From positions 1,240,001-1,304,000 of the forward strand of contig JBLDXI010000012.1 of assembly GCA_047495785.1 (NCBI GenBank): a stretch of 64,000 nucleotides of DNA, read 5' to 3'. The stretch's first letter is position 1; each line of letters opens with the position of its first letter. The DNA comes from Lepidodermella squamata (taxonomy: Eukaryota > Animalia > Gastrotricha). A program made the translations under genes and the position numbers. Positions 50,971 through 54,800 of this stretch are shown here, in pieces. Below the pieces are notes generated by a model that saw only the letters and a list, made by a program, of their open reading frames with translations, was not told the DNA's origin and did not search any database.

Positions 50971-51172
50971 TTCGGAGACTACTAGCAACTTGTGGTTTCC
51001 AGAGTTGTTACAGTCGTTTAATTATGGATCCTCATTATTTGTAAGAGGTTCGGTTATAGCAGGTTCCTTTGCTTTTTTAACAGTAGATGGAGTAACATCC
51101 TACTAATTAGGATCCATGATTAAACGACTATGGCAACTCTGGAAACCACAAGTTGCTAGTGCGGTCTCCGAA
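50971..51172. repeat. Fold-back element: ~62-bp inverted arms with a 76-nt spacer (MITE or hairpin RNA)
   Basis: Arms at 50971-51032 and 51109-51172 are reverse complements with about five substitutions and one small indel. Confidence 0.85.
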
Positions 51173-51527
51173 CTTGAAGTTCGAAGCCTTTTTTAGCTCT
51201 TTTTTATTAACATTTCAGCTGAGGGTGGCCCGAGATTGCTGCGACAAGTTTGAAACTCTGGAAAAGCATAGCTTTGATTAGCGATTCTAAAAATCAGAAA
51301 ACTCAATAAATTCGGGTCTTGCACTATTGATTTCCACAGCTGGAAACAAGCCGGAGTTTCACATATCAGAATTGGATTCGTTGAGCTTTAACTTTGTTCA
51401 ATGAGAGCAATTGGTTTTTGGTGGCGAAGCAAGGTACCTTGCTAAGTCGAAGGTTGTGGAAGAAGGCTAGGTTCATCTCTCGCAGCCGAAATAAATCTGT
51501 AAAAACGAATCTAGTAAAGATACTTGC

Positions 51528-51858
51528 TAAGATAATCGGTAGGACCACGGTAGAGACCCGAAGGTTCTCCTATGGGATTCCTCTCGCAGCCTGGGACCTC
51601 CACACCCATCTCCGTTTAGTTCAATGTTGTGAACATTTTAAGCACAGGGGCCCCGACAGCCCCGCCAAGGCAGGAGACGACGGTCACTTGTAAACCGAGA
51701 CCGAACTTGAAAATTTCTCTCACCTATGTGAGAACCGAGGCGTTACGCGACCCAACATTTGCCGTAAAAAATACGTTGCCCGTTACCGACAAGGGGAGGC
51801 TGCTGGTGTCACTTGAACCGCGGTCGGCTCCACGATTCCTGTGGTAAGATAATCGGTA
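51528..51858 (-). mobile_element. 303-bp SINE-like insert (51542-51844) flanked by a 14-bp target-site duplication
   Basis: TAAGATAATCGGTA occurs at 51528-51541 and 51845-51858. The insert is GC-rich and structured, with a 3' GAGA(A)CC-TTCG-GGTCTC hairpin. Confidence 0.8.
51752..51848 (-). ncRNA. HDV-like self-cleaving ribozyme at the 5' end of the SINE-like insert
   Basis: Minus strand: P2 CCAGCA / P3 GCC / L3 TCCCCTT / P3' GTC / P1' GGTAAC / P1.1 GG / GCAA / P4 CGTA-TTTTT-TACG / G-C-AAA / P2' TGTTGG. The order and the junction nucleotides match the genomic HDV ribozyme. The candidate catalytic C is at 51761. Confidence 0.75.
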
Positions 51859-54800
51859 AGATTTTTGCCACGAGCCAGTTCCGAATAGAGCTGAATGAAG
51901 AAAGTTCGAACTGAGCCCTCATTACTCATATCAATCAAACATATAGCTCTTATTCCCACAACTATAGATTACAATTCCTGCTTTCTTTCAACTTCAACAT
52001 GAACATTTAGATCAGCAGCATATCGCCCTACTTTTTCTCGCTTCTCAATCAACATTTTGGCTGTTTTTACTGTGATTACTCGCCTCTAGCCTTAATTATC
52101 CGCCACTGAGGCAAAATTTCAATTTCAACTTCCGAACGAGGGTATTGCGTTATTATTCCAAATGATGATGTCGACGATGATGAGATGCATTTCGCGTTAT
52201 ATTTATTATTCATGTCGAACGAAAAACGTGTCGCTGTTATATTCACGCTCACCTTCACACGCGCTCTCACAGCAGCAGCAGCGGTATAGGCATACAGAGC
52301 GGAAATGCTTTTCGGTTGTTCGGTTGAAATGTTTTCAAATCATACATACTATAAAGAGGCGAAGTAATGTTTATTTGTAATTATTTAGCCAGGTATTCTA
52401 ATTTGTTGTTTCGACGTCGTTTTATTTACTGCAATTTGGCGCCTGCTGCGCTTGCTGCGCGCTTTTAGCTCAGATTCGCGCGCTAAAATGCGATTCGCGC
52501 GTGTTGTGCCGCTCAACGCCTCTCCGCCTCAATTAGTCTACGCCAAAAGTCAAAATCAAGGGTTTTCATAAAAATTCTGGAAGCGCGTATTTTTGCTGTT
52601 TTTTTTCAAAATCCAGGCCTATTTATTTTGCGCAGTTAATAATAGCACATTTTAATATTTAATTCGGAATCAAAAATTATCAGACAGTTTTAAATACAAT
52701 TAGCAGGTTAATTGGTCGACCCAGGGACCGATCGCCACGCATTTTCAGTAAAATTTTGTTGATATTTACGCACAGGCACGCACTTGCTGGTCATGTTTTA
52801 ATAAATTATCACAGGTGCGCTTCGACTTTTTCACTAAATTTCCGGCAAAATTTTTCATTTTTGCATCACCAGGCATGCGAAGTCTATAATAATCTGCGTA
52901 ACGACTATAGCACCTATATACTTATGCATTGGGGGTGTATAAAAATCTGCTACAATAGTCTAGATTTTCGAGATTTTGATTGCAAAATTTTTGTCGTGCT
53001 CACTTGGGATCTCGCATGAAAATTGCGCGCACTTTGCCGCACCCCTCGCGCACCTGCGCCTGAAAACATCTGCAGTTTTCATAGGTATTATAATTATTGC
53101 CCGTATCAGAAAAAACTTTGAAAACGCTAATAACGCGCATACCTTTTGTCAAGTGCGTATATATAACGCTGCGATATTTATTTTTCACGCGGGCGGAAAT
53201 TTTATCTAGAACTCGATAATACAAGTTTGAACAACAAACTAGTATATATATCTTCATTCGCTCTTTTTGCGGCTTGTGTATTGCGAGTTTGAAAACACTT
53301 GACAACATCAGAGGGAGCGAAAGCAACAACTGTTTCATGGAGTGCTTACAGCGATACAAGTTGATATCGTAATAACAATATTAGTAATTTTATTATCGTT
53401 TTTCGTCTCGTTTTTCCGCGCGCGCACAAGGACACGCGCGCGTTCAATGCGCGCAACTCGGTGCAGAAAATAATAATATATCCATATCTTGTTTCGCGCT
53501 TTGAGCCGAGAAATTTATATTAATACTCATTGCTTACAAAGTTAAGAAGAAATGCGCGCCTTTATAGCGATATAGCCTATTTATTGTAGTAGATAGGATG
53601 GCTTTTTGTTTTTGTGTACGTGAGATCGCCGCGCGAGCGCCGCCTTTTCATGCTGCTGGTGGCTATTCGCCGGCGTGTTTTTTGTTAAACAACTCCATTA
53701 CTAAAAGTCCGTCTCTCTTTTCCCAGGACAGCTATGTATTTCGGATACATTTATTCAAAAGTGACAGCCATTTATTATTATTATCATTATTTTTATTTAT
53801 TGGCACGTAAAATGCCGAGACGGCGAAAAAAACGGAATATATATCTGCGCTTGATGATGATGATAGATATATTATATACAACATGTTAAATGCATTATTT
53901 TTGCAGTCAACGCGATCGCCGTATTACGGCGACCACTGAGGTCGCGCCGCTAAGAGCAACCAAACATGTAATTTTTACCCGCCAAAATGTGTTGTCTAAT
54001 ACTGCTGGCACTGCTTGGTACTTCTTGGTGGCGAGTATTTTTGGCGCGCGCGCGCGTCAGTGTTGACGCACTCGCTTTTTGCACAAGCGCGCGCGACGGG
54101 TAATCATATACCAGAAATGAGAAGATGATGATGATCGTCATTATCTTTGCGCCACGTCCGCATGTCTCACACGAAAATAACATCGTCATCACGCATTTTT
54201 CGCAATCTATCATCTACTGCGCTGGGAGCATCTTCATCACCCACAGTGCATATGACACATCATGTAAATAATGGCTTTTTTCCGATCACTATACGCGCCA
54301 TGTCTCACATTTCATCAGTTTCTAATGAAAAATATTTCTACCTTATTTCCATTAGTGTCAACGGAAATCCATGCCTAGATATCGTTTTATTTTGCTTGTA
54401 GACTGAGAGTGGACGTAAGGCCTAGAAGTGAAATCCGAGAATTTTAAACCCATAAATAGGAAATGAAATAACTTTTTGATGCGCACGCAGAGGCTTGAAA
54501 CCTGTCCCAGTCGATCGAATTCAAGTATTAACAGTACTAATTGAAGCATTGCTGTCATCATATGGTTTCTTAATATTATATACCCCGCAAGTTTTGAACA
54601 CATCTCAAGTTTACCACGTGATTAGTTTTTGTTAACCATTTTGGAGAATTTTTTGCTCCATTTAAGATGAAATTTAAAATGTGCGAGACATATTTTTTAT
54701 AAATTCATTATGAATCAGCATAATTAATTAGAAATTTTTTATAAAATTAGTGAGATTCATCGGTTAAGGCATCAACTAAATTTTCTGTCTATTTTATTTT

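Follow-up and report, generated by a model that had tools for sequence, protein, structure and literature searches.

The window analysed here is a stretch of 64,000 nucleotides from the gastrotrich Lepidodermella squamata (contig JBLDXI010000012.1, positions 1,240,001 to 1,304,000 of the forward strand). Within it, two direct repeats of the sequence TAAGATAATCGGTA (51528-51541 and 51845-51858), identical at 14 of 14 positions, enclose an insert of 303 bp (51542-51844) with a GC content of 0.551 (55.1%), against 0.400 and 0.398 in the 500-bp flanks. The sense strand of the insert is the minus strand of the window; read on that strand, the insert starts with CCACAGGAAUCG and ends with a hairpin (51569-51553) followed by UACCGUGGUCC, and a run of A is absent. 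The borders, the identity of the repeats, the GC contrast, the C(UUCG)G hairpin, and the lack of poly(A) all reproduce what an earlier reading of the letters alone (the sequence-only reading) had described. The features of the locus are:

51542..51844, minus strand: whole non-coding element, a stray copy of 303 nt; the 14-bp repeats bound it, family homology stops at its borders, and it has no ORF of note
51845..51858, no strand: target-site duplication, upstream copy in the element sense, TACCGATTATCTTA
51528..51541, no strand: target-site duplication, downstream copy in the element sense
51832..51847, minus strand: 28S-derived leader (G)UUACCACAGGAAUCG, including the P1 5' strand UUACC (51847-51843); the rDNA copies have the same leader, GTTACCACAGGGATCG, at their 28S junction, and copies L021, L020, L052, and L050 have it at their 5' end
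51859..51875, minus strand: 28S-like pseudo-target CTCGTGGCAAAAATCT, then T^ACC, directly upstream of the duplication; 10 of 17 positions equal 28S GAGGTGTCAGAAAAGTT
51815..51838, minus strand: 9-bp hairpin within a long J1/2 linker, present when the window copy, L004, and L021 are folded to minimum energy
51749..51810, minus strand: putative ribozyme core, P2 5' strand to P2 3' strand, based on pair counts and on the Rfam model RF02682, which aligns to 51751-51818
51553..51569, minus strand: 3' hairpin GAG(A)ACC-UUCG-GGUCUC, kept in L020, L002, L003, L062, and C45:852576
51542..51552, minus strand: 3' tail UACCGUGGUCC, lacking poly(A); extended by four bases it gives ...GGUCCUACC, an ending also found in the 5'-truncated copy L062

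By analogy with the 28S copies and with L052, whose 10-bp duplications start ACC, the core duplication at the window copy is probably the 10 bp ACCGATTATC; the RNA's own ends have T on one side and TTA on the other in common with the 14-bp repeat. Classical SINEs have a head derived from tRNA, 7SL, or 5S RNA with an internal Pol III promoter. The insert has no such head: a scan with 4227 Rfam families gave no tRNA, 5S, or 7SL match in it at E values up to 10. Its 3' domain folds with a stability not above that of shuffled sequence (z -0.48). About 400 bp from the insert, at 51003-51139, lies a near-perfect hairpin of 137 nt that resembles a small palindromic repeat; the Rfam matches to it are confined to microRNA-like models below threshold (mir-3179, 30.6 bits; threshold 90).

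In the genome (121 Mb in 151 contigs) the insert gave 72 BLAST pieces; homology with the window ends at the insert borders in every copy, and the copies contain no notable ORF. A covariance model of the core (R1, covering P2, P3, and P4) was used for a whole-genome search in which 150 of ~36,000 first-look candidates were scored. This search identified at least 40 copies bearing the ribozyme: 12 in rDNA, the window copy (88.7 bits, with the window copy among the sequences from which the model was built), five other dispersed copies (L002, L020, L021, L050, and a weak L003), and 22 within another repeat. Identity between the window copy and its closest relatives is only 72-88%; the assembly accordingly lacks the master lineage of this copy.

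The 22 copies in the other repeat (group c) carry the ribozyme module at the center of a ~3.8-kb unit with 1.16-kb inverted arms that are 83% identical (for example L033:4514-8331, C4:624513-628330; ~21 further loci include L023-L030 and L037-L045). These copies share flanks at 96-98% identity and no empty target site for them was found in the genome, so they were apparently carried along in the spread of the larger repeat rather than inserting anew. One group c copy is adjoined by a tandem array of 2594-bp units with repeated ORFs of 610 aa that have SET and TPR domains (L049:2522-8984, C3:4090521-4096983).

The 12 rDNA copies are 397 nt long and are located in 28S rDNA at GTT^ACCACAGGGA^TAAC, in the orientation of the rRNA; the context is ...GUCAGAAAAGUU^ACCACAGGGA^UAACUGGCUUGUGG, with ACCACAGGGA on either side of the element, and the 10-bp duplications start ACC. 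The flanks of L004 match eukaryotic LSU rRNA with 1600 bits, and the genome has ~505 28S candidates. The insertion site is in the peptidyl-transferase region of 28S and is neither the R2 nor the R1 site. A 5'-truncated copy of 81 nt at this site of a 28S gene (L063:41-121, C27:75980-76060) is 98% identical to the 397-nt copies, which indicates that the family was recently active.

Other elements occupy the same 28S site. One is a truncated LINE (L064), and another is a 1.5-kb non-coding element (L065:44-1533, C27:23923-25412, with L066 on C122 98.9% identical to it) whose core, AGCCUCCAUGUGGCGGUAACG, is related to that of the family and which has a duplicated 13-nt 28S leader, GGGA-T-GTTACCACAGGGA. 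A third is a 4.5-kb LINE (L058:523-5037, C118) with identical 28S junctions and a single ORF of 1119 aa; this ORF has a reverse transcriptase domain, to which its PDB matches are confined, a weak AP-endonuclease match at the N-terminus (E 0.0015), and weak C2H2 fingers at the C-terminus. The non-coding family thus shares its 28S site with an autonomous LINE, while the window copy itself lies outside rDNA. About 250 nt into the 5' UTR of L058 is the sequence CAGCCU...GGCGGUAACG, possibly a divergent form of the family ribozyme. The rDNA unit also includes a 5S rRNA gene on the strand opposite 28S (L004:536-654, L058:5854-5972).

HDV-like ribozymes are nested double pseudoknots in which P1, P1.1, P2, P3, and an optional P4 follow in canonical order, with the catalytic cytosine in J4/2 just ahead of the P2 3' strand; in L3, a conserved U is followed by the CC of P1.1 and then by a G that forms a reverse wobble with the U. 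Threading of the window copy finds each helix listed by the sequence-only reading at the place given there, on the minus strand:

51847-51843, minus strand: P1 5' strand, UUACC
51806-51801 with 51757-51752, minus strand: P2, CCAGCA with UGUUGG
51810-51801 with 51757-51749, minus strand: extended P2, 5' strand with a bulged A
51800-51798 with 51790-51788, minus strand: P3, GCC with GUC, one C.U mismatch
51797-51791, minus strand: L3, UCCCCUU
51787-51782, minus strand: P1 3' strand, GGUAAC
51781-51780, minus strand: P1.1, GG with CC of L3, then GGGCAAC
51775-51763, minus strand: P4, CGUA/UACG
51761, minus strand: candidate catalytic C in J4/2, GCAAA

The rDNA copies can be laid out in the same order, as G1UUACC - 35 nt - GAC(A)CCAACA - GCC - UCCUCGU - GGC - GGUAAC - GG - AUAAC - GCUAA - UGUUGGGUC, with the core reading CAGCCUCCUCGUGGC-GGUAAC-GG...GCUAAUGUUGG and no P4. 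P1 is 6 bp in the family; its 3' strand, GGUAAC, is exactly complementary to the 28S hexamer GUUACC, and its 5' strand lies ~55 nt away from the rest. The L3 sequences UCCUCGU and UCCCCGU have the conserved U-CC-G pattern, and P3, L3, P1.1, and J4/2 of the rDNA copy follow the HDV core nearly letter for letter; in the cmscan alignment, CAGCCUCCCCGU-GGC...GGGCAAC...GGCAAAUG is set against the HDV consensus. In common with the HDV genomic ribozyme and the models RF00094, RF02682, and RF01787, the family has CAGCCUCC(U/C)CG.GGC ... GGGCAAC ... GGC(A/G)AAUG, which align column by column. The rDNA copy also contains CCUCCUCGUGG, the 11-mer reported as the most conserved sequence of the R2 ribozymes of Drosophila and zebra finch (Kojima et al., PMC5035012).

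Nevertheless, the family differs from these HDV-type models in its distant P1 5' strand and scores below the curated gathering thresholds. The only match of the window stretch among the 4227 Rfam families is RF02682 (18.9 bits, E 0.095 on 126 nt, below gathering); across family copies, RF02682 gives 18.9-25.9 bits (threshold 44), RF00094 15.6 (50), and RF01787 14.0 (37), and matches over the ribozyme stretch are to HDV-type models save for one weak unrelated match. These low scores are explained by the models' expectation of an adjacent P1 5' strand. R2 ribozymes may likewise incorporate 28S sequence in P1, cut 13-36 nt upstream of the junction, lack P4, and have a long J1/2 (PMC3774820).

Among 19 aligned copies, 86.5% of cells pair in the proposed helices, compared with 27-51% when the partners are slid. 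P1.1, the CC of L3, and the J4/2 cytosine are invariant (19 of 19), and GGC(A/U)AAUG is kept in 18, the exception being L019 (GGCUCAUG), in which the C itself is retained. A few two-sided changes do occur. The window copy has one in its J1/2 hairpin, with G-C at a pair that is A-U in the majority of copies (a further pair alternates between C-G and G-U), while P2 of L021 shows a paired deletion of one base and L050 a different P4; on these 19 copies, which are close relatives and many of them decaying, they are no better than in shuffled controls. The covariation is not statistically significant. Judged on this alignment, the copies appear compatible with the ribozyme structure and strongly HDV-like in sequence.

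The dispersed copies have their own flanks and their own duplications of 7-14 bp: 14 bp at the window copy, 10 bp at L052 (ACCGTTGGCG), 9 bp at L021 (CTAAGAAGT; 10 bp with one mismatch), 13 bp with one mismatch at L002, ~10 bp at L020, and 7 bp at L003. They start no more than 3 nt from the G of the 28S-derived leader GTTACCACAGGGA: L021 and L020 at G1-T3, the window copy at T2-T3 (TTACC), and L052 with GTTACC after four untemplated bases; L002 reads GGTACC at the leader start (one base different). These 5' letters are the 28S sequence found upstream of the duplication in rDNA, and the chance of finding the complement of the P1 3' strand within 3 nt of the unit end is ~1 in 600 by our own arithmetic. 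The sequence-only reading had predicted GTTACC at the 5' end of relatives, GGC in P3', and variable duplications, all of which were found.

That copies distant from rDNA bear 13 nt of rRNA as a leader implies that the template RNA began at G1, which is the base where an HDV-type cut would be expected if GUUACC pairs with GGUAAC in P1. Release of the RNA from a pre-rRNA co-transcript thus appears to involve a cut 13 nt upstream of the junction, like that of many R2 elements. The second full GTTACCACAGGGA of L065 is likely to be another record of an RNA starting at G1. At the other end, L002 carries ACCAC and L021 carries AC of the downstream 28S, and 5'-truncated copies keep the minus-strand 3' end (~40 nt in L062, from P4 onward in L061, and 118 nt in C45:852567). 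The variable duplications, the truncated copies, the untemplated bases of L052, and the 3'-terminal 28S letters of L002 and L021 mark the copies as products of target-primed reverse transcription (TPRT) of the processed pre-rRNA co-transcript.

An alternative is that the family is truly retroposed but owes its uniform 5' end to rRNA processing or decay, or to annealing of the cDNA, with the HDV-like core a relic. This agrees with the sub-gathering Rfam scores, the covariation that is not significant, and the rDNA copies without P4. It is nonetheless improbable, because the 5' ends fall within 3 nt of the base predicted from P1 in independent insertions outside rDNA, where there is no 28S target to anneal, because P1.1, the CC of L3, and the J4/2 C are invariant, and because R2 ribozymes without P4 exist (PMC3774820). 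Cleavage by the ribozyme is what we infer from these comparisons.

The landing sites of the stray copies resemble 28S as well. A comparison of the 17-nt stretch upstream of each nick with 28S GAGGTGTCAGAAAAGTT gave 10 matching positions for each of the window copy, L002, and L003 and 8 for L021 and L052, while the 1324 T^AC sites of the window used as background had a mean of 5.2 and only 10 of them reached 10; several of the duplications begin AC(C), like that in 28S. At least five stray copies therefore seem to sit in 28S-like pseudo-sites, pointing to a site preference. The flanks of the window copy and L002 agree at 15 of 16 letters and at nothing beyond, which indicates two hits on similar pseudo-sites; a single segmental duplication containing both copies was considered and rejected, flank homology being absent beyond 16 nt.

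The pseudo-sites account for the two TTACC motifs at the window copy: one comes from the pseudo-site (T^ACC), and the other is the RNA leader, joined through TTA microhomology. The sequence-only reading had placed the TTACC strand of P1 at the junction of insert and duplication, with 3 nt of microhomology; the microhomology stands, and the strand is now read as part of a 28S-derived leader. It had also noted that the target TTACCGA could pair with TCGGTAA of the ribozyme, hinting at target-assisted formation of P1 or a site preference. Of these, site preference is borne out by the 28S-like pseudo-sites, and no result demonstrates target-assisted P1.

Target-assisted P1 is the basis of a further alternative, in which the family is a free SINE released from any host transcript, with TTACCGA forming P1 at each new site. 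The pseudo-site does keep TTACC upstream of the duplication, and in group c the copies' own leader is degenerate, such that only the flank AUUACC can pair with GGUAGC. However, TTACC belongs to the 28S-like recognition and nick site; the stray copies, each with its own duplication and flanks, have no close sibling and so spawned no daughters; and the group c copies, with shared flanks and no empty site, spread within the larger repeat. This alternative is very unlikely. A related route from rDNA parasite to genome-wide element, in which a stray copy rebuilds P1 from a flanking TTACC and stays self-processing in read-through transcripts, would make group c an escaped lineage and not passengers; this route is doubtful.

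The family is better described as a SIDE-like rDNA parasite (SIDE, short internally deleted element of an rDNA LINE) than as a free SINE, because its masters are in 28S rDNA, the 5' strand of P1 is 28S sequence, and every stray copy carries the 13-nt leader. The sequence-only reading had proposed a promoter-less, non-tRNA SINE freed from host transcripts by self-cleavage and moved by a LINE. Much of this remains: the element is short, non-coding, headed by an HDV-like sequence and not by tRNA, 5S, or 7SL, and spread by TPRT. What has changed is the source, which is no arbitrary transcript but 28S rDNA, where the masters reside and from which the 13-nt leader derives.

The insert is thus probably an old, dead, off-target copy of a family whose active members reside in 28S at GTT^ACCACAGGGA^TAAC, are released by a ribozyme, and are mobilized by a LINE. 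In the proposed mechanism, an rDNA copy would be transcribed by Pol I within pre-rRNA, and the HDV-like ribozyme at its head would fold with 28S GUUACC and element GGUAAC as P1, followed by the long J1/2 with its own hairpin, P2, P3, L3, P1.1, an optional P4, and the J4/2 cytosine. Cleavage by the ribozyme would take place immediately 5' of G1, at a point 13 nt upstream of the junction. An endonuclease-bearing LINE of the same 28S site would supply reverse transcriptase in trans; it would nick T^ACC, prime on the 3' end of the element (...CCU(C)ACC), and make a second nick ~10 bp downstream. Occasionally the machinery would land on a 28S-like pseudo-site, as at the window copy.

The sequence-only reading had looked to a LINE sharing the 3' end of the element as a check on LINE mobilization, and none was found: BLAST of the last 119 nt and a genome-wide pattern search for the 3' hairpin returned only family copies and 5'-truncated fragments, and local alignment to the ends of L058 and L064 gave matches of 10-13 nt, no better than shuffles. 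The ends of the element therefore differ from the pattern of SIDEs, whose ends resemble those of a partner LINE. A search for a LINE with the same ribozyme by BLAST (first 106 nt), by core pattern, and with R1 (150 of ~36,000 candidates) found no ORF-bearing element; among the neighbors at the 28S site, only the non-coding L065 shares the ribozyme core. The single long ORF adjoining a 3'-tail match belongs to a host GPCR gene. We infer from the shared site and the pseudo-site preference that the best helper candidates are LINEs using the same two 28S nicks (L058 type). The idea that the insert is instead the 5'-truncated 3' end of a LINE coding on the plus strand, with a chance HDV likeness on the minus strand, fits the duplication and the lack of poly(A), features of many LINE tails, but it is hardly credible given that no copy is joined to an ORF, that truncated copies retain the minus-strand 3' end and not the plus-strand one, that the rDNA copies follow the orientation of the rRNA, and that the 28S leader is at the minus-strand 5' end.

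The design proposed for the rDNA-based family is already known from the R2 SIDEs and especially the R2/R1 hybrid SIDEs of Drosophila, and the upstream 28S cut from many R2 lineages. Like the family described here, the Drosophila SIDEs are short and non-coding, reside in 28S rDNA, rely on being co-transcribed with rRNA, have a 5' HDV-like ribozyme with a long J1/2, and insert by TPRT with variation at the 5' junction; the hybrids combine an R2-type ribozyme with dependence on an AP-endonuclease LINE (R1) and a 14-bp duplication (Eickbush & Eickbush, 2012, PMC3414825). Drosophila SIDEs are 64-83% identical to the ends of their partners (PMC3414825), whereas the searches here found no LINE whose 3' end matches; the family also differs in its 28S site, its animal group, and its documented stray copies outside rDNA.

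Autonomous R2 elements share with the family a P1 5' strand of 28S sequence, a predicted cut that lies upstream of the junction by 13 nt (like that of R2 in Nasonia vitripennis), retained 28S letters that can anneal to the target, and a variable or absent P4 (Eickbush, Burke & Eickbush, 2013, PMC3774820). R2 has a restriction-like endonuclease and another target site; the family here lacks an ORF, and the LINE at its site, L058, has the weak AP-endonuclease match. The LINE L1Tc and the short element NARTc of Trypanosoma cruzi share an HDV-like ribozyme within their first ~77 nt that frees the RNA from long transcripts; NARTc is, like the stray copies, short, non-autonomous, dispersed, and flanked by duplications (PMC3185411, PMC5814959). 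The trypanosome elements are genome-wide and have poly(A), while the present family is based in rDNA, borrows P1 from host rRNA, and has no A tail.

The stray copies are in effect fossil cDNAs that record both ends of the reverse-transcribed RNA, and they place its 5' end 13 nt within the rRNA, on the base where the ribozyme is predicted to cut. They thereby furnish in vivo evidence that R2's combination of ribozyme and rRNA also serves a second 28S site, unrelated to that of R2, in an animal group that has received little study. A preliminary outline of what the helper enzyme may recognize comes from the pseudo-sites, ~15 nt upstream of the T^ACC nick. For annotation, GC-rich inserts of 0.3-0.4 kb of this kind in this genome are likely to be debris of rDNA elements and not new small-RNA genes.

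The window copy itself is old and almost certainly inactive, and it should neither cleave nor move. It has C in place of G1 (the target's C at 51848), and L3 reads UCCCCUU where the family has UCCCCGU, its conserved G replaced by U; P3' reads GUC instead of GGC, another G-to-U change. P1 has five of six pairs and P3 two of three, and ~95 nt of the central segment are also absent. The sequence-only reading had already suspected inactivity from the missing G1 and the P3 mismatch, to which the L3 change is now added. In R2 of Nasonia, a G-to-A change at the same L3 G abolished cleavage (PMC3774820).

In the contigs of one sequencing run (X1; type unrecorded, possibly made from the source sample), both junctions of the insert were covered and no empty-site joint was found. 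In this run, the contig across the 3' junction (window 51250-51603) had a depth of 43.9, compared with 86.5 about 500 bp away (52051-52150); this halving might reflect a heterozygous insertion haplotype.
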